Positions 15,567-56,463 of a stretch of DNA of 64,000 nt are shown here, piece by piece (position 1 is the stretch's first letter; every line of letters starts with the position of its first letter). Under the pieces are notes generated by a model that was given only the letters and a program-made list of their open reading frames with translations, did no database searches and had not been told where the DNA came from. The position numbers and the translations under genes were made by a program. The DNA is from Chlorokybus atmophyticus (Eukaryota; Plantae; Mesostigma and Chlorokybus algae). The stretch is from NCBI GenBank assembly GCA_009103225.1, contig RHPI01003587.1:186001-250000 (forward strand), in the 5' to 3' direction.

Positions 15567-16711
15567 TATTTGACTGGTCCGTGCCGCACCATGTTTAGTG
15601 CGGAACGGACCATGTCTGGTGCGCGACTGCGCACCAGGATGTGGGGCCCCGAACGGACCAGGAATGGTCCGTCCCCCGCGGACCAGGCAGTCCTGGCCCG
15701 CGGGATACGGACAATGAATGGTCCTTGAACGTCAAGTCGTGTGCAACATGAATGATTTCGCTGTGATGCTTCACAAACTCGTCCTTGGTCATCATGTCCG
15801 GGTTGTTGTCGCAGCATGTGCTTGTGGTGTTCTTCACGGTAACGAGCCTTGAAGCTAGAGAAGCAAGAGACATCCAGCACCTACAGCAATAGAGGTCAGA
15901 GCATGTATTGATTGTTCTATTGTAGAGTATGCACAGCAACACTACTTGCATGGTGTGTGTCAGGTGAGGAGGGAGCAGGATGATGTGCACTCCATGCTCT
16001 CTAGCCTTGAAGATGAGGTCCAGCTACATTTTGCTATCAATGACGAGGATGCATGGGTACTGAGGTTGGAGCCCCCAGCTACGTAGCCTAGGAAGTGGTT
16101 GAACCAGGCAGCAAATGTTTCATGTGTCATGTAGGCGTTCTCCTGTGCATATCATTCATGAGTGCATGCACGTATGAATGGACGGTGAGTGCATGTACAG
16201 CACTTACCTGCATGGCCACCATGCAGCCTGGGTGCATCTTTGAGGTAGTTCTGTGTCTTGCGTTGCCCTTTGTGTATGTATCACACGGATTGACGTTCAA
16301 GGACCATGAATGGTCCGTGACGCAGGACCGGGATTTCCCCCTGCTAAATGAAATCGGTGGACCTTGCATGGTCTGTTTTCATCGACAGTCGGACCGTTCA
16401 TGGTCCGAATTTCACGTGAATGGTACCATTGTCCCTTGGTACGCACCACTTAAGGTCCGGCCGATTACTGTTGCGTCAGGACCAGGTATGGTCCAGCCAT
16501 CGGACCAGGGACAAAGTCATCACAATACTTCAATAACTGGTCCGGCCAGCGGACCATCGACCGAAGTTTAATATGAAACAATGCAAACATTAGTGCAACT
16601 GCAGTAAAAGTTGAGACATCTTTGCCGGCGGCACCGGCCACGCCCAACCTGCGGCGCAGGAGGCCGCGGCCAGCTCCGCGGAGTTAGTGGAATGATTAGT
16701 CAAGAACACAC

Positions 16712-16784
16712 CGCATCGGCCGGATTTGAACCCAGTACCTTTAGCATATCAAAGACGACGCCCTAACCACTAAGCTACAAGTGC
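16712..16784 (-). ncRNA. tRNA-like 73-nt sequence inside copy B
   Basis: Minus strand GCACTTGTAGCTTAGTGGTTAGGGCGTCGTCTTTGATATGCTAAAGGTACTGGGTTCAAATCCGGCCGATGCG. Good A-box and B-box (GGTTCAAATCC), D-stem pairs, anticodon stem broken. Confidence 0.65.
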
Positions 16785-18453
16785 ACGTACCGGTAGGGCC
16801 GTATGGCAACCTATATCATGTTGTTTATTGCATGCGCCGACAGCCGCTTAGCAACTGTCGGCCGGCGGCAGTAATTGCCGATGGACAGTCGGAGATTGTG
16901 TGTCACTTTGATAGGCCCATAGGCTGAGCCTATGCAATTGTAGCATTTATAGGCTGTACCAGTTACATGGACGGTGGTAAACTACATACCGGTAGCCGCG
17001 AACTCGGCGGTTGTCAATACGCCAGTACAATTTGTAGACTTGTTAGGGGCTGTCATTATGACAATGCTTAGTGATAGTAGCCAAATTGCGACTGTCAATG
17101 CAGCCAGTGTACCTTATCGGGCTGTCGATGATTCTGTGGTCGCATGAGGCTTTTATAGGCCATTTATGAGGTTATACAAGTAAGGCTATAAGTCATAACA
17201 TCTGACATTGCTTGCGCTTTTGTTTCATACAAATTATTAAAATCAATCATACCATAAACTACGCCTAGCAATGCAACATGCGAACAGCATCAACATATGT
17301 ATTCATGGTATGATATTAACGGTTGTGAACATCATAATAATGTAATAACCAACGAACTATATATAATGTAATTACACGCGCAACGCATGGATGTAAATTT
17401 GCTTTAATTATAATTGTAGACTATGTAATTGTATAGTAATCATAACACTTTGTACAATCATATTTTTATACATTATTTTAGATATATATAATTTTGCATA
17501 TGAAAGGTCTAATGCACATGTGTACGCGCATCAATATACTTACAACAATGTATGTACATGAAATGATAGATATGAAGTAATTGCACGGCTACGTATTGCG
17601 GCCGCAATACGTCAATAATTTTTGCTTGTATACCTTAAGCCTATTCCTACATGCACACACACACACACGTATATTTATCAACATATATATACATATGCAT
17701 GTATACATATATATATATACATATGCATGTATACATATATATATATGTATATATACACATATCCATTTATATGTATATATTTATATGTATACACATATCC
17801 ATTTATACATGTATAGGCCACAAGTGGACAGCCGCAACTGGTCGGCGGCTGTCAAGTTAAAATGTACATGGACAGCCGGCTGTCATTATACATTGACAGC
17901 CGCCGACCATTTGCGACTGTCCACTTTATGGTAAGCAGCGACAGTCGGTGCGGCCTGTCATTTATTAAATGATGATACACACAATGTACCTATGTACTCG
18001 TACATGCAATAACGATACTTCAGTCATGCTACACGTGTAGCGCGCCCTGCAGGGCCGCCAACCAGCAACATTGCTGGTCCATGCCGCCCCATACATGGTG
18101 CGGTACGAACTATGTACGGTGCGCGGCTGCTGGGCCGCTGAGCCGCGGGCCCACTCCTGGTCCGCATCCAGGAACCAGCGTAGAGTACTGGTCCGTGCCG
18201 CACCATACAAGGTGCGGCACGGACCATGGGCATTACTCGTCGGCTTCAACTATTGGCCGGCGAGTTTTCGTTTAACAAATTAATAAGTAAGTGATTAATA
18301 CGTATAGTTTAAGTTAGGGTTTGCCTCTGTTGCTTGACACACACGTGTCAAGCAACAGAGCAGTTGAGGCCGTCACCTCAGCGGCGGCGTTGTTGGCGAC
18401 GCTGCTGGCGACGGCGAAAATTCGGCGAAAGTTTGGGGAGAGGAGAGAGAGAG

Positions 18454-20072
18454 ATGCCGCCGAAGGGGCGGGCTGTGGCTGCTGGCGGGCAGCGCGGCCG
18501 AAAGAAGCCGGCTGCTGGAGCTGCGCAGCCAGGCAAGCAGGCCGCATCACCGGCCGGTGATGAGGGGCAGGCCAGCGCGGCCAAGCAGCGGCGAGCAGCG
18601 CGGAAGGCCACGCAGCCTGCTGCGCCGGTAGCTAGGCGTACGGCTCAGCCTGTGCCGCCAAAGTCACATGCGGCCGACGCAGAGCCAGAGCCAGAGCCAG
18701 AGCCAGAGGTGACGCTGGAAAACGCTGCAGAGCCAGAGCAAGCTGCCAAGCTAAAGCTGCCCACGGTTCCGCGACGTCAGCGTAGTAGAGTGGAATTGTC
18801 ATCCACCTCGGAGGAGGAGGAGGACAACAAAAAGAAGAGGTTCAAGAGGAAGAAGAAGGTGCACAAGAAGAGACGCACGTCGTCCTCGTCATCCACCTCC
18901 TCGTCATCATCTAGCTCTGATACGGACAGCTCCGACTCTGGAGATAGGCATACGAAATACATCAAGCACATCGGCTTCATCAAGCGCCTGTCCAAGCAAT
19001 CAGAGACATATGCCTTGTGGGAGGAGTACCGCACGCGCAAGGTCTCGACTGGTGTGCAGGCTTGCTTCGAGGCGATTGGCCGTGCCCTCTTCACAGGTCC
19101 GCCAGTTGCGCAGTTGGTGTCATATCTGTATCAGATGCTGCTCACGCACGTGCACGGTAGCGTGGACTTTGCAGCAGCTTTTGCGACCGGGGCTCGAGGT
19201 ATCATCAACGACGCCCGCATCAACCGCAAACACAAGGAAGCCAAGGTGATTCGGCGCCTCACCAAGCTCGCCAACAGCTTCCAGGGCAAAGCAGCCATGC
19301 AAAAGGCAAAGACTTCTGTCCCTCAGTAAGTCTGTTGCTTGTAAGAGTTGTAACACCAAACATGCAATGCGCTGACATGCACACATGCACTCTGCTTAAC
19401 AGTCGCACAATGTGTGCGTGCAGTATGCTCAGCAACTGCTGTTTGTGTCATGGTGCAATGCGCACCTGCTTATGAACATGCACAATGTGTGCATGCAGCA
19501 TGCTCAGCAGCTGCTATCTGTTGTAATGGTGCAATGCGCGCCTGTTCAACAATGGCACAATGTGTGCATAATACATGCAGCGTGCACCACAGTTGCTGTC
19601 AGATAGCATGGTGCTTCACGCACCCGTTGTATTTGATAATGCGCACAATGTGTGCATACAACATCAGTTGCAACACCATGTCAATGGTGCCATGTGCGCC
19701 TGTGTCCACTCCCATATATATGTCAAGCAGTGCACAGCACTTGTTCATGTGTTGGTGCACAGCACATGTGCTGTTACTATTGCATTGAACAACCAGCTGC
19801 AATGGGCACGGTGCATACCTGTGAGTTCTACTTAAGGTTTGCTTCACGTCAGACCATTGATGCAATCGTGCGCCTACAGGCGCTCCGTCACAGAAGAGGG
19901 GAGTACCCAGTTCCAGCGTGGACGCGGTCGTGGTGGCTACGGCCGCGGTGGTCGTGGTGGTTACGGTCGCGGAGGCGGCTACAACAATCAACAGACTGCG
20001 CCCGCTCACCAGGAAGCGCTGGCATACTATGTCCCCGTGCAAGAGCAGCCACGCCTAGCATTGCAGCAGTAA
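18454..20072 (+). CDS. DIRS ORF1 (gag-like), probably spliced (intron 19326-19879) to an RGG-rich exon
   Basis: ATG at 18454, open to 19329 with K/R/S-rich low complexity then a helical region. CA|GTAAGT donor and CTACAG|G acceptor join in frame to RSVTEEGSTQFQRGRGRGGYGRGG... Confidence 0.65.
19405..19830. repeat. Degenerate ~75-85-bp tandem repeat inside the DIRS ORF1 intron
   Basis: Recurrent gcacaatgtgtgc...atggtgc..tgcgc.cctg units, about 4-5 copies. Confidence 0.7.
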
Positions 20073-20262
20073 GTCATGCTGCCAGTACAGCTGCCGAGTA
20101 GCTACAGTGCAATAGCAGAAGATGTCGACAGGTGCTGGTGTGTATCATAGCTGGCGCAAGCGCGCATGTATGCATGTATGCGCGCAACTGCGCATGTATG
20201 CATGTTTGGATGATGTATTATAGTGTACTTGAAGTGCAGCTGTTCATGGCTGACAATGGCAT

Positions 20263-22680
20263 GTGTGTATGATACACACAGCTGTATGTTACTTGACAGG
20301 GTTATTTCGCATACGAAAGGCCAATAGTCACTTCTGGTATAGCTTAATTGATTGGCATGTGCGCAGACATAGCACATCTGAAGAACTCGTCGCTATTAGT
20401 GCCATTCTTGAGGATGATTGCATGCAAGCAGAGTGGGATCCTGCAATGCCAGCTTTGGCAGTGGACCCTTTGTCCCCACCAGAGGAGCACACTGATGTTA
20501 TTACACAAGTGCCACACACTGTTGCGAGCTTACCTATTGCACAGCAACAAGAGGACATTCGTTCAGTATATGCGGAGTTGTCACAAGTGTCAACAGGCTT
20601 TGAAGAGCATCCTAGCTCAGCAACCCAATGGGCAGAGCAGCTACACACCGAAACTCTTAATGCGGAAAATTTTGTGGCAGCCTCTTTGCAGCAGAAGCTC
20701 GCAGCATGGACCACATGGTTTCACTTGACGATGCAAAGCAAGAAGACATTTGTGCTTGACTGGTTGCGTTACGGGTATCGCTTACAATGGGTCGGCACTC
20801 AAGCATCGGATAGACGCAAGTGGGAAGAAGTACATGCATTGTTACAGGCCGAAGGCTTTGCTGTTGAGGATATTACAATTATGCTGTCACGCAATTCCCC
20901 AACACCAGTTGTGTTTCGAAATCGCAAGTCCGCTTCTATACATCGCGAATACGTTGTCAGTGAGTTGGCAAATTTGGTGACAACAGGAGCAATCTCTGTA
21001 GTTAATGCGCACAGCGCGGCAGTGGTCACTGGCATAGGAGTGGTTGAGCAGGAAAAACGTTTGCGACTCATTATGGACCTGAGGTATATCAACCTCTTTT
21101 TGCGCCACATTCCCTTCAACTATGAGAGGTTGCGCGATATATTGCTGTACACAAAGCGCCACTTTTGGCAAGTAACAGCGGACTTGAAGTCGGGTTATCA
21201 TCATGTGCCCATTCATGAGGACAGCAAGCCTTACTTGGCTTTGCGATTTGCTGGAGTCACATACAGGTGGAATGTGCTGCCATTTGGCCTGAGTCAAGCA
21301 TGCTGGCTGTTTACGAACTTGATGTCCACTGTCTTCACGCCTTTACGGGCTATGAGCTTTCCATGCCTTTCCTATATTGATGACATGCACTTCAGCCATT
21401 CCAATCGTTGGCATTTGTGCTGGCGCATTCGCCGCGTACTGCGTCTGTTTAAGGTGCTTGGAATATATATTTCTGTGAAGAAAAGCCAGTTGTGGCCGGA
21501 GCAGGTGGTACAGATGTTGGGTCTGCTGGTGGACACTGTGGCAGGCTCTTTTGCTATTCCTGCAAGCAAGCTGACCAAGCTATTGCAGCTGATGAAGGAG
21601 TTAGCAGAAGCTCCTATATTGACCAAGCGTCATCTGGCACGCATTGCTGGCAAATTGATTGCGCTAAGACTAGCTTTTGCACCTGCAAGCATTTATGCTC
21701 GCCAGCTGATGCGTTTAGCGTTGGTTGCTGATGCATGGGACGATACTGTGAGTGATACGAACGCCTTCAGACACTTCTGTGAGTGGACTGCTGCTGGCTT
21801 GCAGACTTACAATGGCAACGCTTGGTGGAAGCCCCCCGTACTGCTTGAGCTGCACGTGGATGCTTCGGGTACCATTGGTTGGGGGGCGACAGGTCCTTGG
21901 CCTCGCATGGCAGGCAACTTTCAGCCTGAGCATATGTCGCTGCCTTCGGCCATCAAAGAGGCACTCGCTTATGTCCAAGCATTTACTGAAGTAGCACGCA
22001 CGCACGATCTTCAGCACTGTACAGTGCGCATTATTGGCGATTGTCAACCAGCGATTCAAATGCTCAACAAGCTGTCTGCTTCTGAGCCTCATATCCTACA
22101 AGCTTTACATCAATTGTGGTCTTTGTGCTGGGAGCGTGATATTGCGCTGACATGTGTGTGGCGCTCACGTGATGAGCTGCGTGATGCGGATGCATTATCT
22201 AAATTTACTGACAGAGGAGATTGGGCCCTGACCGCAGACGCAACCGCGCTTGTACAACAACGTGTTGGACACCCAATTTTGGATTGTTTTGCAGCTGATT
22301 GGAACAGCAAAGCACCTGCTTATTTGAGTTACATACACATGCCTGGAAGTTTGGGCAATGCTCTTACTACAAACTGGCGCGATGTTCTTCAACGCTTAGG
22401 GGGCGGCTTTGTTTGGTGTCACCCGCCATTGGCCCTCCTGCATGAAGCCATAGCATTATTGCAATATTACCAGCTGCCAGCTGTGGTGTTGGTGCCTGAA
22501 TGGCACTCTGCTGTGTGGTGGCCAGTGTTCCGCAACTGGCAATTCACTTATTATGAGAGATTAGGCCCACGGCCCGAATGGTTTGAACGTGGTGCTCGAG
22601 TACCCGAAAACAGCATCAACCCTGGACGCTACCCATACATTTGTGCTTTTGTGCATTGGGTAAGCGCACCTTTCGTGTAG
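20263..22680 (+). CDS. DIRS reverse transcriptase - RNase H - DNA N6-adenine-methyltransferase-like polyprotein
   Basis: Uninterrupted 805-codon ORF: RLIMDLRYIN, DLKSGYHHV, LPFGL, YIDD (RT); VDASG..GWGA, KEALA, GDCQ, DADALSK (RNase H); DCFA...NAL...WCHPP...LVPEW (DIRS MT domain). Confidence 0.95.
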   Translation: MCMIHTAVCYLTGLFRIRKANSHFWYSLIDWHVRRHSTSEELVAISAILEDDCMQAEWDPAMPALAVDPLSPPEEHTDVITQVPHTVASLPIAQQQEDIRSVYAELSQVSTGFEEHPSSATQWAEQLHTETLNAENFVAASLQQKLAAWTTWFHLTMQSKKTFVLDWLRYGYRLQWVGTQASDRRKWEEVHALLQAEGFAVEDITIMLSRNSPTPVVFRNRKSASIHREYVVSELANLVTTGAISVVNAHSAAVVTGIGVVEQEKRLRLIMDLRYINLFLRHIPFNYERLRDILLYTKRHFWQVTADLKSGYHHVPIHEDSKPYLALRFAGVTYRWNVLPFGLSQACWLFTNLMSTVFTPLRAMSFPCLSYIDDMHFSHSNRWHLCWRIRRVLRLFKVLGIYISVKKSQLWPEQVVQMLGLLVDTVAGSFAIPASKLTKLLQLMKELAEAPILTKRHLARIAGKLIALRLAFAPASIYARQLMRLALVADAWDDTVSDTNAFRHFCEWTAAGLQTYNGNAWWKPPVLLELHVDASGTIGWGATGPWPRMAGNFQPEHMSLPSAIKEALAYVQAFTEVARTHDLQHCTVRIIGDCQPAIQMLNKLSASEPHILQALHQLWSLCWERDIALTCVWRSRDELRDADALSKFTDRGDWALTADATALVQQRVGHPILDCFAADWNSKAPAYLSYIHMPGSLGNALTTNWRDVLQRLGGGFVWCHPPLALLHEAIALLQYYQLPAVVLVPEWHSAVWWPVFRNWQFTYYERLGPRPEWFERGARVPENSINPGRYPYICAFVHWVSAPFV

Positions 22681-23799
22681 GTAACGGTGCATGATAACAG
22701 AACTTCTCCATGTGCCTTGAGCTTGTATTTCTTCCAGAGTAACGCCACAGCGGAAGGCGCTCTGAGCGGCACCACGTCTGAAAGAGTGCAACCCCAGGTG
22801 CGGCCTATATATGCCACATGCCTTGCAGCAGCGCGCAATTGCATGGTATGCACAGTTACCAGACATGCTATGTTCTTCCCACTTCAACCTATTCTTCGCA
22901 ACAGGCCGAAATAGAGGACCAGCGGTGATGGCAAAGCAGCTCCCGCGACAGTAGGTCAAATAGGCATAGAGCACTTCAGAGAACTCCACAGGCAAACCAC
23001 TGCTGCGCACTGGTATAGTGGGTGCACCTCCAGTGCTGTAATTCTTGAGATGTGTTACAGTGGCCGTCAACCCAGAACCTGCCGCTTGTATCTCGTGCAT
23101 CTGTAAACGCGCACCTTCACCACCCCGTTGCCATGTGCACCATAGGTATAGGCAAAGTGCATAGTCGCGCCAGAGCACAGCCTTATCATGTGTGACTGTC
23201 AGTTGCTGAGGTATGGTAAACAGCTGGTGTTGGAAGTATGCGATAAGCGTTCGCATGTCATCAATTGCCAATGGCACAGCAGGAATAGGTTGAACTCCTT
23301 GCCGAGCAGCAATCTTTGCATATCCTTGACGGAACTCGCGCACGTCTATGGACAGAAGCGGGTTCCCTGTGGATGTGTCGCTGTCCCATGGGCTGATGCG
23401 CCCTAGAAGTCTGAAGGAGCATGTGAGATGTGAGATCACATTGTCTAGTGTGGTGCTGGCGATCATGCGATGACCATGGCGGTCGAGCCTGCGAGCTTTG
23501 CCGATGTGTGTGTCGGTCCAGTGCCCAGCAAGGTAGCTTGTGACAATAGCTGGGGTGACGTTGGCGACGGCAATGTTGAGCTCAGGATGTTGCAGGTAGT
23601 TGGCAAACTCTTGCCAGACGCGATCGCGTTGGTCGCGAGTGCCATCAGATACAGCTTCACGACTGATGCGCTCTACTTCCAAAAGCGCTGCTGCTGCTCG
23701 CTCTCGCAGATTACACCCCATTACTTGCTGTGGACGCACAGTCGCGCGTGCGGTGCGTTGTGCATCAGCGGTATGTTGCAAGCGCTGTGCGAAGTCCAT
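22561..23799 (-). CDS. DIRS tyrosine recombinase (antisense to RT, overlapping its 3' end)
   Basis: Open frame (ORF track 22561-23910; likely ATG 23799) with catalytic R (WQRGGE), K (HLKN), HxxR (HSFRR), W (GTWRS) and Y (HRYL). Confidence 0.93.
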   Translation of the reverse strand: MDFAQRLQHTADAQRTARATVRPQQVMGCNLRERAAAALLEVERISREAVSDGTRDQRDRVWQEFANYLQHPELNIAVANVTPAIVTSYLAGHWTDTHIGKARRLDRHGHRMIASTTLDNVISHLTCSFRLLGRISPWDSDTSTGNPLLSIDVREFRQGYAKIAARQGVQPIPAVPLAIDDMRTLIAYFQHQLFTIPQQLTVTHDKAVLWRDYALCLYLWCTWQRGGEGARLQMHEIQAAGSGLTATVTHLKNYSTGGAPTIPVRSSGLPVEFSEVLYAYLTYCRGSCFAITAGPLFRPVAKNRLKWEEHSMSGNCAYHAIARCCKACGIYRPHLGLHSFRRGAAQSAFRCGVTLEEIQAQGTWRSSVIMHRYLHERCAYPMHKSTNVWVASRVDAVFGYSSTTFKPFGPWA

Positions 23800-26094
23800 C
23801 TGCACAACGATCACACACATTGTCAGACGACTGCGCGCAGCACTCTGCGCAAGGATCAAACACTGTGTCAGGCAACCAAACAAAACTATCTTGATTTGCA
23901 ACTTTGGCAATACAAATACACCAGGCTCTACACCTACAACTCGTCCCTACTGATATATGCTTGGGAGGGGGAGGTAGAATGTTCAATGCATTCGCAGTTG
24001 TTCATCGTGTAAATCATACTTATAACGATGAACGCGTATGATCGTAGGGCTTAGGTGTTCTTGCCAAAGTTGGACTGTAGGTAGGATAATTGTTTGAAAC
24101 AAAAGGAATGTAAATCGTTCATCGTGTGCAAAGTAGTATAATGGGCATTACTTGTCGGCTTCAACTATTGGCCGGCGAGTTTTCGTTTAACAAATTAATA
24201 AGTAAGTGATTAATACGTATAGTTTAAGTTAGGGTTTGCCTCTGTTGCTTGACACACACGTGTCAAGCAACAGAGCAGTTGAGGCCGTCACCTCAGCGGC
24301 GGCGTTGTTGGCGACGCTGCTGGCGACGGCGAAAATTCGCCCTTCCCGCCCCACCCTGATGCGCCGCCGCGCTTCACAAGAACTATGCGCCTCGTCTCGA
24401 TTGCGCTTTCAAGTTCATGCTCATGCTCAGGAACGAGATAAGTGGATCGTGATTCTAAATGCATTCGTCTCGGTTGAATAGGATCCGGGTTGCGTCAACG
24501 GCGTGCTGCTGACCGTGCGATTACGTTGTTACATCGACGGTATTTCGCTTCATTGCTAGCCGCCGTCGGTACATCCCGAATGTTCAATGCATTCGCAGTT
24601 GTTCATCGTGTAAATCATACTTATAACGATGAACGCGTATGATCGTAGGGCTTAGGTGTTCTTGCCAAAGTTGGACTGTAGGTAGGATAATTGTTTGAAA
24701 CAAAAAGAATGTAAATCGTTCATCGTGTGCAAAGTAGTATAATGTGTGGTGCGCTACTGCGCGCCAGGTGTTGGGGCCCCAAAAGGACCATGCACGGTCC
24801 GTCCCTCACGGACCAGACACTCGTGGTCCGCGGGGACGGACCATGTATGGCCCGCGGGGTCCGTGGAAGGACCATGCATGGTCCCCGAACGTCAATCCGT
24901 GTGTATAGAGTGGGCATGCTGGTGCCTGCAGCAGAGACGCATGCCATGATGCTGATGTGCTCCATGTTGCCAACCTTCACATGGAAGAATCAGTACAAAT
25001 CGTATACCCGTAAACTGCAATCGATATGGCCAGCGTCCGCGAGCCGCATACGTTTCTCGTACAAGCCATGCATGCACCATATGTGGTGGCGTCAATGTTA
25101 CAGGCCATACTGGTCGTCGGTTGTACCATACACGCTGTGCACTTAAGCCACATCAGATGTGGTGCAAACAGCGCACCATGTATGGTTTCATAGATTTTTA
25201 CCGCCATTAATGGCTTGAACCCTGTTGCCACCATATATGGTGCTGCATATTCACCACCACATCTAGTGCAAGACTCAATGCCATGTATGCTGTAAATTTA
25301 TAGCCATGTGTGTGTTGTTGATACATGACCATGCATGGTGTGTAAGCATTGGTGCCATACATGGTCTGAAATCAGCGGCAGGTGTGGCCCCAAACCTATG
25401 GACCATTGCAGGTGCGCATCACTTGCGTGTCGGCTTGCATGCGCGCCATAAATGGTTGTGACTTACGCTGACTGCCACAGCTTGTTCCATTTGTGGCGCT
25501 AATTATTGCCAACTGTAATCAACGTCATGTACCTGGTCTTTATAAGAAGTTGCGTTGATTGCCATATGACATGTGTACATCTTGAAGTAGGACTCTAGGC
25601 ATGGCATTCAACGTCACAAGCCAGTGGCCGCATGTGCACGCCATACATTATTAGCCAACAACGATGACTGCCATCCAACACACAATACTGGGCCCGTATG
25701 TGTTGGAAGGGCAGTCAATGTAAGTGGACTTGCTGTATGCTAAGAACGACATTGACTGCCAGGAAGCAGCACATTTGACACGATAGCCATCTACTAAATG
25801 CAGTTAACGTCTTGAATGCGACTCTGTCATTGATGGCCACTAAGTTGCATCTCTGAGGTGTTGGCAGTGTAAAATGGCAGGTATATTGTAAATAAGACCT
25901 CACACACAAACATATATCAGCGCTAGTGAACATACCAAGTTCAACGCGGATGAAGTACTGTATAATATGGCCTACATGTTGAGTGGTAAACTGACATGTA
26001 TCATATACAAATGCTTGTTTTTAATTTAATTGGGGGGTGGGTGGCTGAGCGAGATAAGCTTTCAAAATTGCAAGTTGGCAAAGTTAGCCATCGA

Positions 26095-28517
26095 TTAATC
26101 AATCTTGCGCATCAGTTTCATGTCATCCTTGGTTAGGGTGACGCGCTTGCGATGGATGGCTACTAGATTTTTGCACGCCATCAACTGGATACATTCACAT
26201 CCATACATGGCATGCATGCGGGTGCACACAGGACTTACGCCTTTTCAAGCAGCGTGACAAGGAAAGTTTCGGCAGCCTCTTGAATGGCGAGTATTGCATC
26301 GGATGTGAACCTGAAAGGATCCTTATCCCTGTGCTGCTCGTTGCAAACCTCCCTGACTAGCCTGGAGAATGGCAGCTGTTACCATACAGTCTAATCAGCA
26401 CAAGTGCAACATGTAGATGGGGCGTGAGCTTGCGGCAACGTGCATCACACCAACCTTAGCAAGAAGCAGCTCAGTTGACTTCTGTTACTTGCGAATCTCG
26501 CGCAGGGCCATGGTACCCGAGCGGTTACGATGTGGCTTTTGCTGTAGCTCTGTCCGACCACGGCGTGCGTGCTTGGGCAGACGCTTGGCGCCTATTGTGG
26601 GGCGACGTCCCTGAATTGTTGCGTTGCTGGCGCGTGGCTTCTTCTTCTGGCGCTTGGAGTTCGAGGCGCCTGACTTCTAGCGCTTGCGCTTTGCGCCGTT
26701 TGTAGTGGTACCCCCTCCCGTAACCTCGTTGTTATCGGCTGCGCCCCCTGTATTGCCGGCAGTGGCATCAGCATTTGGCAGATGAGGGAGAGGGTATCCC
26801 ATCAGGCGGTAGAACTCGTCGGCGTGTGCGTTCAGCTGGGCGTCTATGTTGTCAATGACTGCCTCTATCTGCGCGTAAAGAAGAGTTACACAACCACTCA
26901 TGCCCAGCAACGTAGTGTGCAAGCAGGTTTAGGGTTAGGGTTAGGTCACATGTGCTCACCTCTTTCACTTGGTTGACTAGGAGTGTGTGCTCATGGTCGA
27001 GCTTCTTGTGTTCTGCAGGCGATGTAGACAGCTGCATCTGGAGATTGTCCCTTTTCATTGGCTGGTGTAGTGGGCAGGGCTGCCGCTGCATCTTTGCTTT
27101 GCTTTGAAGCAGTGGCGCGTTTGGCGATGCAGTTGACGAGCTAACCCTTGAGGACTTGGCGTTCATCCTCGCGCGCTTGTAATCGGTCCAACTGCTCTTG
27201 ACTGAACACCCTCAACTGCATTACACTCGCATGCTGCGCAATACAAGCGACAATGTTAGTGCAATGTCAATGTGGCAATAGGCGGAGTGCTTGGGACAGA
27301 CGATGCCGATCAACTGTAGTCCCACAACAACAGCTGCATTTGCTGCTATGATGCACGCAGTGAGGACACAAAGCGCATGCCCACGAACTTTAATTACAAC
27401 AACACTTGCCTTGTCGGCTGGGAGCCCAGCAGACCGAATGGGGCAGAGTCTTGTAGTCCTCACAAACTCGTGCCATGCATGCGTCAAACAAAGTTGTCAA
27501 GGGCTGGCATCATCTCCACATGCAAGCAAACAATGTGCGTTACGGCGTGTAGCTCAAATGTGTATTGCTAGTGTGCTGCAGTCAAAGCATGATCAAAAGA
27601 CTCATGTTGCATGCCACTGGACTAGGGGATGCACGTGGCATGCATGAATGCTGATGTGTCTGGCTGAACAGTAAGGAGAAGGGAATGTGCTTTTTGGGAG
27701 GAAGAGTGCAATGTTATCAGTAGTGCATGCAAGAATGCCATTGCACAAAAGAGGCATGGAACTAGCATGCATACTAGGTGCGTGTGGGTGCCACAGACTG
27801 CACCACAAGGTGGTTGTGCTTAGAGCAGCCGAGCATGAATGCAAGGTGGCTGCAAACCTTGCTTGATTGAAACTGCCCCTAAACATGCATGCAACTGGCA
27901 GGCATAACTAGGTGCACACATGTGCTATGATCTGAACGATAACATGGTTGAAGGGATAAGGCATGGTTGAAGGGATAAGGCAGGCAGGCAGGCATGCAAC
28001 TGTCATAACCTCCTCGCCGCCGAGCGCCGTCACGTTGATGGGTGCATTCTCAGGCGGCTCCTCAGGTGGCTCTACCGGCAAGTTGCCAGGCACCTCTGGC
28101 GTTGTGGTGGTGGCTGCTGCCCTCCCCCCCCTAAAACCATCAGCTACCGTTGGAGTGGCCATGTGGGCGCTAGCAGCGTGCGAGGTGGTGGCAGCCTTGT
28201 TGTCGGCCACCGGCGTTGTGTGCGCCTCCCCAGCCTCCCTAGCCGGCGGGGCGTTGCCCATGTTAGCTACACAATCCGCCATGGTCGACATTGCTGCCGC
28301 CTCCCTCGTTCACCTCGACTATGCCGCCAACCTCGCCGTGATTGGACTTGTGAGGTCAAAAAGCGCGGGAAACCTTTCAGACTAACCTTGCTGGCAGGCG
28401 ACGCTGACAGCCCATCGACACAGGGAATGAGGTAGCATTGATTGTTGGTGGCAGCAGAGGATCCGATGCCCTCAAGGAGTGATGTGACGCCTGTGGTCAG
28501 TGGGCGAGTGTCAGATG
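26095..28517 (-). pseudogene. Multi-exon gene ending in a histone H3 fold with CENH3-like features; 5' part continues at 50286 onward beyond the CACTA insertion
   Basis: 26095-26540 splices to [97 protein letters not shown]. It is preceded in frame by a basic tail and helical exons. Two in-frame stops; the last acceptor appears mutated (tgcag>tgcaa, inferred). Confidence 0.85.
26928..26945 (+). repeat. Short interstitial telomere-like (TTAGGG)n
   Basis: tttagggttagggttagg, inside a predicted intron. Confidence 0.6.
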
Positions 28518-49782: not shown

Positions 49783-51045
49783 GCAATCCTACGAAAATGT
49801 GGACCTGTATGAGCTTTTATGAGCCGCAGACCATGCACGGTGCGTGCTGCTTGTTAAAAGTGACCAATAAGCTCAGCGTGCACCAGCAATGGTCCGCCCA
49901 ATGCTTCCGGTTCAGACCAGCCACTTTGATGTTATCTACCGGAACATATATGGTCCAGCATTTATGTAGTCCGGACCGTGCATGGTCCGGAGACCCATTG
50001 ACAGTCGAACTGGGAGAATGCCTGGTCCGGCTGCGAACCATTCATGGTCCGGACTTTCACGGCAAATCGGACCGGTATACACTGTACACTGTATAGACTG
50101 TATCACCTGATCCGGCCGCGGACCAATCTGGTGCGTAATTGCGCGCCAGGTATCCGGCCCCGAAAGGACCATGGACGGTCCGTCCCCCGGGGACCAGGCA
50201 CTCGTGGTCCTTGGGGGACGGACCATGTATGGCCCGCGGGGTCCGTGGAAGGACCATACATGGCCCGCGAATGTCAAGCCGTGTGATGTCGAGTAACAAC
50301 CTTGCTGCCACCAGACATTGACAGCATGCACCGTTGCGACTGCGTTGTGGTGGTTGACGCCGTTGTCTGGTAGATCGTCTTTAGGTGGCGGCGGAGGCTG
50401 AGAGTGTTGTGTGCGAAACCCATTGGCGCTGGCCACAAGCGGAAGCACCCTGTGAGCCATGAAGAAGGTGGGATTGTTGGCACGCTAAATGATGCATGTG
50501 CATGATGATATGACCGCTGTGCCCACAATAGAGCCGGGTTTGCCCCATGCAATGAATCCATTATCACACCAAGTATCTGTTGTCTTTAAGCAGAATGCAA
50601 GCAGAATGCATGCATGTGCTGATGTCAGTGTTTTATAACGGTTATGCTTCGAATGGTGTCATGCATGTCATGCGTGACCATGTGAACTGCATGCATGCAA
50701 AGATGTCGCATATGTGTTGGTTGACTGATGTCGTGCATGCGAGCGGCAGACATCAAGGCCGCATCAAGTTTACCAGAGCTATGTGTGATAATTGTGATTG
50801 CGCCGCGATTTGTGTTGTTCACAGCGTGTACACTGCCGAAGTTCAATGTGTGTGCGCTGTGTGCGTGTTGTTTCCCAAGGCGTCTCGCATGCAGGTTTGG
50901 GCCTTCCCCTTCCCTCCATAGGAGGGCGATGCTGCTGTTGTTGTGGATGCCGTGGAGCTGCGTGGTATTCCACGCGGTATGCTTTGCTAGTAAATTCATG
51001 AAAGAGGTGCAGCTTGGCCTGCTCTAGGATTGCTACTGTTCCGCC

Positions 51046-52791
51046 ATGCGAACAGCACTAGACAGCCTCTCTGTTGCCATGATGCTGGGTGAGGTAGAGT
51101 ACAACGACGTGCTCCTTGACAAGGAGCTAGTGCTGAGCCTTAGCAAATGTGCGTGCGATGAGGATGGAAGGCTGCAGTTTTGTGGAGACCACGGGGTGAG
51201 GTCGCTGTGCATTGCTCAGGTGAATTGCAATGCGTTGGTGCATTGGTGCATTGGTGCGTTAATGTTGTGTGTTGGCTGATGCGGTGGGCATTCGCCAATT
51301 AGCAGCTCGATATTGTGTTGCGCCGACTGAACATCCCCACCAGCAAGGACGACGACGGGAGTGGCTGCTGACTCCATGCCTATTACGCCCAGCATCTGCT
51401 CTTGTATGCGTGCCATGTTCATAGGTTTGTGAACAACGAGTGTTTCATATGGATCAGCATTGTCCAATGCGTGCGCATGAATATGGCCAGCGCATTCCTT
51501 GCACGGTTTGGCTGCGATGCTATGATCACTCTGGTCAGGTCGCTCTATTGTGTGGCAATGACTGCAAGCATAACTTTGTGTAGGCGTCAGTCAAGTGACA
51601 TACGCCCTCCCGCTTTTGCCGACCTTGACCCAAAGGTGGAGACAAAGCTAAGAAACATGCAGCTCATCCCTTTCTTTATAATGTCAAGAGCTGGCGAAGC
51701 ATCTGAGGCTTACGTGAGGTTGAGGGACTTCTGCTTCTGGCAGCCGTTCAAGTATGGGCGTAGTAGCCGGGTGTTGCTGCAAATCCACACCGCGATGCGT
51801 GACAACCCGGGTCTGGAGCAGCTATGAACGCAATCAGCGACTGCGGTCAAATGGCAGCTCGGGGTAGCCATGTACCGCATCATGGCGGGGTTGCCGGCAC
51901 TTGACATGCGCCGTGTCGGCATGGCGACTGTCGCGGAGCACATGCCACCGATTACGGTTGAAGAACATGTGGCGACTCAAGCAGCAATGCAAGCTGCCCT
52001 AGACACAGACTTGGAGAGCCTCGCAATGGCTGCCTTTGAGTTTGAGGATGCGGCAGTCCCAGCCTCGCCATCCCAGCCTCGCCATAACAGATTGCAAGTG
52101 CCAACCCCAACGAACCATCCCGCCCAAGTGTCCCAAAGACCACTGATGTGCTGAAGCTCTTGGCCGGCCGGCCAGATCAACTGCTGTTCTGTGTCTCCAC
52201 TGCTGCCGGTCCCATCTCTCGTTGGCGCCGATTTGCATTGCGCATGCTCACCTGGGCAAACCCGGAGGGTACCGCAAGTCCTGAAAAGGAGGGTTACAAA
52301 GTTCTCATGAATGCGGGGCTGTTGGCAGCGCTGTGGGATGCGGGAACTGGTCCTGTGTTGAGTCACGATGATGCAGGCGCACTCATTACTAACAATGGTT
52401 GCCATTGTGTGTCCACTTGCACAGTGCGGGATTTGTTTATTGGCAATTAACACTTGCCCGTGAATGCGCACATAATGAGAACACGATATACGATCAATTG
52501 CGCTGATCTTACATGCAGCTTGTCGTGACTGCAGCCATCGTGCGGAGCGTCTTGCGTGGTCTCGGAGTGAAGCCTGCTGCCGATGCTGATGCCGATGACG
52601 ACGATTCTGACGCTGAAGATGACGACCCCCGTGGTGCCTCTACTAGCTCAGCGCCGATTGCAGAGGAACGGGCAGTCAAGCGGCGACAGCTTGAGGCAGA
52701 CATAGCTGCTGCGGTGTCAAAGACCATGTTGGATCGGCTGCCACATGCTGATGAGCTGCGGGCAGCCCTCAAGAAGCTGGCGAAGGATTAG
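51046..52791 (+). pseudogene. Multi-exon gene of unknown function, with stops
   Basis: Protein-like exons (PAFADLDPKVETKLRNMQLIPFF...; AMYRIMAGLPALDMRR...; LEADIAAAVSKTMLDRLPHADELRAALKKLAKD*). No recognised domain. Confidence 0.45.
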
Positions 52792-52959
52792 ATAGTCTTT
52801 TGGGCTGCTTGCTACAGTATTGTGTGCGGTTGTGAACCTGACTTGAAATGCAAGCACGGCCATGCATTGTTTAGAACGGTAATGCAACAACATGCAACAA
52901 TTGTTAAAAATGCTTGCTCGATCCGCACACGATGATGGGCCACGCTAACATTGATTGGC

Positions 52960-53620
52960 ATGCAAGGTTTGTGGTGTACACTACATGACATGCAAGGTTC
53001 GTGGTGTACACTACATGGCATGCAAGGTTCAGGGTGTACACTACATGACATGCAGGGTTCAGGTTGAGTCTCCACCCTTACAGTAAGTAGGCTATGTGTA
53101 CACTACCGATACTCAACTGGGAGACAACCTGTCGACTCAAATTGATCAATTGATGACATGCAAGGTGCAGGTTGAGTCTCCACCCACACAGGATGTACAC
53201 ATGCTATGTGTACACTACCCATACTCAACTGGGAGACAACATGTAGACTCAGATTGATTGGTTAATGACATGCAAGGTGCAGGTTGAGTCTCCACCCACA
53301 CAGGATGTACACATGCTATGTGTACACAACCCATACTCAGCTGGGAGACAACCTGTAGACTCAAATTGATTGATTGATGACTTGCAAGGTGCAGGTTGAG
53401 TCTCCACCCACATGGGATGTACACATGCTATGTGTACACTACCCATACTCAATTAAGAAACAACTTGGAGACTCAAATTCATATTAATCGCTGACATGCA
53501 AGGTGCAGGTTGAGTCTCCACCCATACATGATGTACACATGCTATGTGTACACTACCCATACTCAACTGGGCGACAACCTGTTGAGTCTAATTGATAAAT
53601 TGCTGACGTGCAAGGTGCAT
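52960..53620. repeat. Minisatellite: three ~30-bp units followed by 112-114-bp units with internal hairpins
   Basis: Units start at 53154, 53266, 53378, 53492 and 53604; each full unit contains TGTACACAT-GCT-ATGTGTACA. Confidence 0.92.
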
Positions 53621-54031
53621 GATCTGTTGCGAACGATGGAATAACAGTTGACGCTCAGCAAGGAGCAGTTCATGAGTGCTTCACATAATGATGATTACTA
53701 CATCGGATTTACACATGCTCCTCATGTTTGATTACTATTTTTGCATTATTGTTGTTATCGCTATGCACTTGATTGCCAAGCGTACCGCACAGTTTGAATT
53801 ACCGTCAGAGGATTGATTCCATGCAACATGTAATGAGGACTGCATGGCCTGTGTCTCAACATCAACCACAAGCAGTGCACACATAGACATAGCCGGCGGC
53901 CAGCATGCCATTGACAATAACAGCCATTGCAAGCATGATTGCTGTCGCTGCGATGGGATAATGGCAGGTAGCGTGCCGCAATTGATGTAGAGATGTTGCG
54001 GGCGTGACCATTCGGTTAGCATAAAAGCAGC

Positions 54032-56065
54032 CTACTTTTTAGATGCTAGAGCAATTGAACGGAATGATGCAAGTTCGCGCAGCATCATGGCTTGTACTGT
54101 AGCATCCCGACTATCAAAGCGACCGCGTTGGAACCGTTCCTTCGTTGTGGCATTCATGATTTCAATGCGCCATTGGCGGCCGCTGGCTTTGCGACTCCTG
54201 CTCTTATCCATCACAATGTATCCCTTGATGTCGTGCCCTCTGTTGCGTGACGGTTGTTTAAGACGTTTACGTTGCACATAACCAATCACCATTGCAGGTA
54301 GCTGCGGTATCGAGGCAGGTTGCTTTCGAGCTGCACTTGCTCTTTTGTCACTTGCACAACTGGTTGGATCACGTGCGCCTGAGCCATGGCATAGATCAGG
54401 GGACCATATGCATGGGTTTGGTTCTGCTGGACAACTGCCATCGTCCTTTATGGGCGTGGAGGGTGCGAGGATGCGTGGAAGGCTGCGATGAACGACCTCG
54501 CCGCACAGTGGTTTAACGCACATGTAACACGCACATGATTCTGGACCAAGGACGCATGGGTAACCGTACGAGGGCTCCAGTTCGTGAGGGCGATTATCAT
54601 GCTCCGCCAGCGGCATGCCGGGCATGGGCTCGTGTTCTGGCCAGACTGGTGGCGGCGTACATGACGCTGATTGGAGAGAAGCATGCAGCGCGGTGCGGTT
54701 GGGCACCTGATGATGCAGTAATGGATTGACACTGTGTGGATGCGTTGTGGTGATATATTGCGGGCGCATAGGTGTGACATGGTTGAGCAGCAGCGTCGAT
54801 AGATGAGGGTGCGCTGATAGCCCTGCAGCGCATGCAACAGGGCTGAGTTGGGCTGGCATTACAAGAATAGATGTAACTATTACAGCATGATCCATCATTC
54901 AAAGCATCACTCAAAATAGAATCATACCAACAGTGGGTCGCCCTGTGTACAAGAGCTGTGGTGCACGTGCATACGCCAGCCACTTTGTGAGTGCAAAGCT
55001 GCTGCAACGCCACCTTGACATTAACGACCAATAAGAGAGAGACGCAGAACAGGTTGTCCCTTTACAAAAGCGGCAGCAGTGTATGCATGCATGTGTCAAC
55101 ATGCATATGGTGTCACATCAAGTATGCACATGCTGGGAGCTCACCAATCCGGCGTGGTCGCACACGTCCACAATCCAAATGCATATGTCTTGAGCCAGCG
55201 GAGTCTGATTCAGCATCATTTGCAGGCCCGGCGGCAAGAAGTGCGTCCGCCATTTGTGCAATCCTCAGTGCGTTACAATCCTATCAATGCACGCCAAGTC
55301 GTTAGCCGCCGACCACCACGCCGCCTAGACCATCATCAGGCTTTTTGGGCGCCAGAACGTCTAATGTGAGTTGCTGGACGGGCGTGTGCTCATTATACAT
55401 CTGGCTGGGCGGCGGGCGTGCAAGTGCAAGGCGGCGGGCGTGCAAGGTTGATGGCGCGATCTCGGCCAACTGGAATATCCACAGGGGCGCCTGGCAACAG
55501 GCAGAGTATGGCAAAAGAGCGAGGGTGGCAAGACAAAGGAGGGCAACAGAGCGAGGATGGCAACAGAGCGAGGATGGCTATTTTGGAACGCCCCCGCCAA
55601 TGACATCACCCATGCTGAGCCGCTTGCCCCTACCAATGACAACACCCCTGCCTCTGACAACGCCCCTGCTGAGCCTGCCGCACCCAGTGACAACACCTGC
55701 AGCGTCAATTATGGGATTGATCGAGGTGACACGCGTGTGCAGGTTTGCATTGTCTGTACGCTTGCTTGCGTTAATCGCATTGTCTGGGCACAGCGCATGC
55801 ATTGGAGCAGGAGCTCAAGAGCTGCGCCGGCAGGTGGGCCGCTAACTGCACTTGCAACCTCTGTGCTATGCGCATCACGGGCAGCCTTGGAACTCACAGT
55901 GTGCATGCTTTGTAGGTCGAGACCCAGCGTGCAATCAACAACGAAGTGACGGCAAATGAGATCCGGTATCAAGAATACTGGGAGTCGATAAGAGCCAAGG
56001 TAAGCCCATGTACCAGTCATTACGGCATTGTACTCGAGTAGGTGTGCCCTCGTAATCTTGCTAAT
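54032..56065 (-). pseudogene. Multi-exon gene with a C-terminal AP2-like motif; 5' end cut by CACTA copy C
   Basis: C-terminus KGYIVMDK...SGRQWRIEIMNATTKERFQRGRFDSRDATVQA resembles the AP2 three-strand plus helix pattern. Upstream Cys-rich and PLWIFQLAEI segments. Confidence 0.4.
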
Positions 56066-56463
56066 CACACGGCTTGACGTTCAAGGACCATCTATGGTCC
56101 TTTCACGGACCCCGCGGACCAAGCATGGACCGTACCCCGCGGGCCAGGACTGCCTGGTCCGCGGGGGACGGACCGTTCCTGGTCCGTTCGGGGCCCCACA
56201 TCCTGGTGCGCAGTCGCGCACCAGACATGGTCCGTTCCGCACCGGACATGGTGCGGCACGGATCAGTCAAGTACAGTCTACCCCCGTTAAGAGACTTCGG
56301 TTTAAGAAAATAACCCCGCTAAGATCATAGATTTTTTAAAGACCGATGGTTTTACAGGCAAATATCGTTGGTCAAGAGAATATTCCCGTACGTAATAAGT
56401 CTAATGTTGCAACATGCAAAACCCAGTGGTCCTATTCTCTTATCAGGGTAGCAGTGCTATGAG

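Follow-up and report, generated by a model that had tools for sequence, protein, structure and literature searches.

What is a histone fold with centromeric features doing between transposons, at the end of a much longer and apparently decayed reading region? The question is raised by the reverse strand of a locus in a 64,000-nucleotide stretch of Chlorokybus atmophyticus DNA (the window), in which the first-pass annotation had seen either a paralogue of CENH3 or a histone mimic or centromere-targeting module borne by a transposable element. CENH3 is the centromeric variant of histone H3 (CENP-A, Cse4 and HTR12), of which the replacement of residues Q68 and T107 is a hallmark, and in which a Trp at the position of H3 F84 is usual, though not universal. 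Paralogues and pseudogenes of CENH3 are known in Drosophila (Cid), Caenorhabditis (hcp-3), cowpea and cereals. Our literature search found no paper joining Chlorokybus with CENH3 and, with the terms used, none on H3 carried by transposons.

Six-frame translation placed three pieces of an H3-type fold on the reverse strand, namely the tail and alphaN (26676-26455), alpha1, loop 1 and alpha2 (26375-26239), and the end of alpha2 with alpha3 (26170-26098). The alphaN stretch resembles the H3 motif, but a TAA codon replaces the expected Tyr. The Pfam family Histone (PF00125) matched the second and third of these pieces, exons 5 and 6 of the gene described below, with E values of 9.2e-12 and 3.6e-5, respectively. 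Comparison of exon 5 with solved structures gave Cse4 and CENP-A as top matches, above H3. Both aligned to it without a gap, whereas 44 query residues stood against 41 in the alignment to canonical H3, indicating that loop 1 is three residues longer. Where H3 has FQRL the locus has FSRL, replacing Q68 with Ser, and where H3 has EDT-N it has EKA-N, replacing T107 with Ala; RVTL is also present, and the head of the protein, which has no Pfam match, carries neither ARTKQTAR nor another H3-tail motif. At the position of H3 F84 the Phe is kept (RFT), while most CENH3 proteins have Trp. The traits listed in the first-pass annotation (an H3-type fold with FSRL, a longer loop 1, EKA-N, RVTL and RFT and without an ARTK tail) are therefore all in the sequence.

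To which gene does this fold belong? Searched exhaustively with HMMER, the 46-residue fold exon gave two specific matches, Chrsp18S02994 and Chrsp231S03544, which are labelled P0003 and P0009 in our searches and are both gene models of Chlorokybus atmophyticus Chlat1 (EukProt/JGI). Chrsp18S02994 is the public model of the locus itself. Chrsp231S03544, an uncharacterised protein of 482 AA residues with a 395-residue head and a Pfam-recognised fold (E 6e-23), is the sole other annotated relative in the databases searched; further searches with the 104-AA head ORF, Chrsp231S03544 and Chrsp18S02994, narrowed by their length window, gave no additional family member. Combining tblastn of Chrsp231S03544 with the junction sequences and exon-by-exon alignment, we delineated a gene of six exons on the reverse strand (28291-26062) with the fold at its 3' end. 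Exon 1 (28010-28291) starts with the ATG at 28291-28289, just 5' of which lie two in-frame stops, and encodes 94 codons of an Ala/Thr/Pro-rich low-complexity head up to the donor GAG|GTTATG; it shares 52% identity with residues 1-66 of Chrsp231S03544, with Met1 falling on the ATG. Exon 2 (27398-27478; 27 codons; donor GTT|GTAATT) is 59% identical to residues 145-171. Exon 3 (26960-27233; 274 nt; acceptor cag|CAT, donor GAG|GTGAGC) contains the main part of a long helix and matches in two frames, with 50% identity to residues 174-233 and 62% to residues 234-262. Exon 4 (26455-26868; acceptor cag|ATA, donor AAG|GTTGGT) provides the helix end, a basic Lys/Arg-rich tail and the H3 alphaN; it is 57% identical to residues 264-342, and its alphaN motif was compared with H3 and with a second Chlorokybus protein, Chrsp78S07740. 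Exon 5 (26239-26375) encodes alpha1, the lengthened loop 1 and alpha2 (70% identity to residues 400-446), and exon 6 (26062-26170) the remainder of alpha2, then alpha3 and a C-terminal tail (83% identity to residues 448-482). The homology of exon 6 continues for 11 codons beyond the TAA at 26097-26095, and the stop of the family is the TGA at 26064-26062. The gene boundary formerly drawn at 26095 is consequently a premature stop.

The exons upstream of the fold encode a head of about 290-300 residues that is homologous to the head of Chrsp231S03544. In a single-sequence AlphaFold2 model of the latter, which is poor overall (mean pLDDT 51), a disordered N-terminus (residues 1-140) is followed by a long helix (168-285, with pLDDT 77-96 over most of its length), a disordered basic tail and then the helices of the fold; the long helix is the region to which exons 3 and 4 of the locus align. 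The helical, low-complexity upstream region of several hundred residues noted earlier can accordingly be recognised as the counterpart of a head with a predicted disordered start and long helix. An ESM Atlas search with the head gave no usable neighbour. Homology to one gene prediction, Chrsp231S03544, supports the assignment of head and fold to one gene. A processed pseudogene (retrocopy) was considered and rejected, given five intron-sized gaps between the matching pieces, with GT at all five donors and AG at three of the five acceptors. As the introns are kept, the duplication would have taken place at the DNA level. The CENH3 gene of Gonium pectorale has its introns at different positions and is uninformative in this respect.

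Could this gene still work? Seven lesions were located on the reverse strand, of which the stops and the extra base were read directly from the sequence and the two lost acceptors were inferred from the exon borders of Chrsp231S03544. The acceptor of exon 2 reads AT in place of the expected AG (27480-27479). Exon 3 carries a TAG stop at 27143-27141, where Chrsp231S03544 has Gln, and an extra base near 27047, its 274 nt being one over whole codons. Exon 4 is interrupted twice, by TAG at 26679-26677 (Lys in Chrsp231S03544) and by TAA at 26487-26485, in place of the Tyr of the alphaN motif RKYQKST in H3 and CENH3. The acceptor of exon 6 reads AA instead of AG (26172-26171), and the exon ends prematurely in the TAA mentioned above, at a codon for Leu in Chrsp231S03544. 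With four in-frame stops, one frameshift and two lost acceptors, the locus cannot make a histone, and the earlier description of a decayed protein holds. Judged by its sequence, the locus is a pseudogene, a dead paralogue of a long-headed, CENH3-type H3 family.

The public annotation offers a different view, since Chrsp18S02994 (198 AA) stands as a gene model in both the JGI and EukProt annotations and would describe a working gene, with the stops removed as small introns or explained as assembly errors. Short DNA contigs from public runs match the locus exactly, though over parts of the head only. The model is identical to the pieces of the locus, joined so as to avoid stops: it begins within exon 3, skips the stop-bearing stretches, loses the last part of alphaN and the first part of alpha1, and ends before alpha3. 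With parts of alphaN and alpha1 and the whole of alpha3 missing, its product could not form an H3 fold, and seven independent lesions are too many for assembly errors. A working gene is thus highly improbable, and the public annotation already contains, in Chrsp18S02994, an untenable model of the locus.

Compared with the locus, Chrsp231S03544 displays the same six-part layout and the same C-terminal tail, with identities of 50-62% over the head and 70-83% over the exons of the fold; around alpha3, 22 of 24 residues are shared. It differs in its first exon, which is longer and contains an internal repeat, in Trp (RWT) at the position of F84, and in a loop 1 that is five residues longer than in canonical H3, compared to three at the locus. 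Its alphaN is either defective or mis-modelled. Residues 345-398 of Chrsp231S03544 match the locus only one base off the H3 frame (ARFASIRSQQSCYW compared to ARFASNRSQLSCFL in the shifted frame), so that Chrsp231S03544 encodes no alphaN and must be frameshifted or wrongly modelled. Neither of the two public models is hence an intact member of the family. The lower identity of the head relative to the fold exons points to past selection on the fold, suggesting that the lineages of both copies were selected on it for part of their history.

The fold of Chrsp231S03544 allowed the relation to CENH3 to be examined further. All 14 of the 14 best solved-structure matches to residues 396-482 are Cse4, Cnp1 or CENP-A (E 2e-18 to 5e-16), with canonical H3 below them at about 7e-16 and weaker. 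The closest database folds are 54-61% identical and carry RWTAEALLALQE, and the named members of their clusters come from the green algae Volvox and Gonium. The family thus shares with CENH3 the H3 fold, the longer loop 1, the replacement of Q68 and T107, a divergent tail without ARTK, and, in searches of solved structures, Cse4 and CENP-A as the top-ranking sequences; decay of copies after duplication is also familiar from CENH3. Unlike CENH3, the family has a head of about 300-400 residues, in which one helix of about 118 residues is predicted, and a C-terminal extension of 11 residues, and the same genome holds a separate, conventional CENH3 candidate. The latter is Chrsp78S07740 (P0056; Chlat1), whose fold is one of the closest database folds mentioned above, a protein of 182 AA residues with a Gly/Ala-rich tail, an intact alphaN and the green-lineage motif RWTAEALLA, features that make it the candidate for the conventional CENH3 of Chlorokybus and a useful reference for CENH3-like findings in this genome.

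Did the locus, then, simply arise by recent duplication of the only CENH3 gene of the host? Its alphaN motifs are nearly identical to those of Chrsp78S07740. The folds of Chrsp78S07740 and Chrsp231S03544, however, are only 58% identical, loop 1 is shorter in the former, the helix head is missing from it and its tail is wholly different, from which it follows that the locus is not a plain duplicate of Chrsp78S07740. An unresolved maximum-likelihood tree, computed from 71 columns of 100 folds, sets the family apart on a long branch of its own, which also argues against a recent copy. Constraining the family to group with the green-lineage CENH3 clade was not rejected (p-AU 0.78), the constrained tree having a log-likelihood 27.8 above that of the quick free search; such a grouping would suit a recent duplicate as well, yet in view of the differences above we give this explanation hardly any credence. 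An old origin of the family from CENH3 is compatible with these data. The proposal of a CENH3 paralogue is thereby sustained within limits, as the fold bears the CENH3 signature and is no copy of Chrsp78S07740, while the 71-column tree, in which grouping with green CENH3 was not rejected, lacks resolution.

We then turned to the DNA on either side of the gene. The window contains six ends of the type CACACGGNTTNACNTTC, compared to 0.5 expected by chance. The insertion next to the gene, as previously annotated, is of CACTA type: a nested, SET-bearing element of 21.8 kb (28518-50285) with matching inverted ends starting with CACACGG and a 3-bp target-site duplication, ATG, inserted 226 bp upstream of the ATG at 28291. 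Another CACTA-type element lies downstream of the gene (16282-24903; target-site duplication TAT) and contains an LTR retrotransposon. The right end of a third was matched at 15727-15743, and the left end of a further one, on the forward strand at 56066-56082, marks the upstream limit of the host DNA. One CACTA-type family, with CACACGG ends, subterminal GGACCATGCATGGTCC palindromes and 3-bp target-site duplications, has inserted at least four times into roughly 10 kb of host DNA.

The 226 bp between the ATG of exon 1 and the insertion (28292-28517, reverse strand) have no match in Chrsp231S03544. It had been proposed that the reading frame continues at 50286, past the CACTA insertion. When the insertion and one copy of the duplicated ATG were removed, a frame of about 140 codons did stay open across the 50286/28517 junction. 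This frame, however, differs from that of the ATG at 28291, which it overlaps, and tblastn found no match to it in Chrsp231S03544; moreover, the frame of the gene itself has two in-frame stops before its ATG. The open frame is thus upheld, but not its continuity with the gene, and both 28292-28517 and the sequence from 50286 onward are read as upstream non-coding DNA.

These surroundings bear on whether a Helitron, a Pack-type CACTA or some other mobile element carries, or once carried, the gene and spread the family, its remains now being too decayed or distant to be recognised. Such a history would fit the retained introns, which point to duplication at the DNA level, and the location of the other annotated copy on a small scaffold, Chrsp231. 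CACTA-type elements flanked by 3-bp target-site duplications surround and break up the locus, as in genes captured or interrupted by CACTA/EnSpm elements; unlike the captured genes, the H3 gene is their target or neighbour rather than their cargo, since it lies outside every pair of CACTA ends found, between the elements at 16282-24903 and 28518-50285. Excision of the insertions restored 9.9 kb of host DNA (15744-16281, 24907-28517 and 50289-56065), in which no inverted or direct terminal repeats were found around the gene, Helitron ends being too short to judge from one copy, and which has no similarity to the remaining window. Its ORFs of at least 75 AA residues gave neither a Pfam match nor a transposon protein; those scanned comprised eight ORFs of 50286-56065, the frame at 28270-28515 and the exon 1 ORF at 27908-28291. 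Exactly matching contigs of two public runs, which apparently represent low-depth DNA of the same alga, reach a depth of about 3 over the gene, several-fold below the 13-30 recorded for the CACTA ends. The difference hints weakly at a low-copy locus, as copy number is poorly reflected by contig depth. The contigs leave 25669-27004, including the fold, uncovered. The copies are also old, with heads only 50-62% identical. Taken together, these results give no support within the window to a histone mimic or centromere-targeting module borne by a transposon, and we regard transport of the gene by a mobile element as unlikely.

The closeness of the SET-bearing element is coincidental, as suspected before, since the element inserted independently and has a target-site duplication of its own. 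A link between the coiled coil of this element and that of the head was also considered and discarded, as tblastn of Chrsp231S03544 gave only a match of E 0.83 inside it.

Combining gene structure, lesions and surroundings, we consider it quite probable that the locus is a pseudogene that arose as an intron-retaining, DNA-level duplicate of a Chlorokybus-specific H3 variant with CENH3 features, lying in host DNA that was later invaded by CACTA elements. The intact form of such a protein would consist, in order, of a disordered low-complexity N-terminus, a probable coiled coil formed by one helix of about 118 residues, a basic tail, a full H3 fold with an extended loop 1, and the hydrophobic C-terminal tail of 11 residues. 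It would presumably bind H4 and be built into nucleosomes in the manner of CENH3, leaving the helix available for pairing two heads or recruiting partners. The duplicate would have resided in low-copy host DNA, into which at least four CACTA elements inserted afterwards, the SET-bearing element among them.

As a pseudogene, the locus alone is of small importance. The family to which it belongs places a CENH3-like fold behind a long head with an extended helix, beside a conventional CENH3 candidate, in an alga among the earliest-branching streptophytes, and offers a case of duplication and remodelling of a CENH3-type histone outside animals and flowering plants. It also bears on the public annotation of Chlorokybus, in which both models of the family are partly artefactual, Chrsp18S02994 through splicing around stops and Chrsp231S03544 through its off-frame alphaN. 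More speculatively, intact members might constitute a second, lineage-specific centromere-type histone that acts apart from CENH3 via its coiled-coil head, with copies spread by transposons or serving them, for instance by marking or targeting transposon-rich, possibly centromeric chromatin; we consider this a long shot.

Several other features of the surrounding DNA were recorded. Within the CACTA element at 16282-24903, two stretches of 199 bp (18226-18424 and 24141-24339) are 99.5% identical and bracket a gag-pol region, and have the appearance of LTRs belonging to a young retrotransposon. A direct repeat of 167 bp (23977-24143 and 24578-24744; 99.4% identity) overlaps the edge of the right LTR. 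In the host DNA upstream of the gene, tandem repeats occupy 53045-53619 and 52956-53063, one with a period of about 110 bp and 83-87% identity between units and the other with a period of about 30 bp. An ORF of 288 codons without a Pfam match (54032-54898, reverse strand) shares its strand with the H3 gene and, after excision of the insertion, lies some 3.7 kb upstream of it; the C-terminal part of its product faintly resembles, by eye only, an AP2-type DNA-binding motif.
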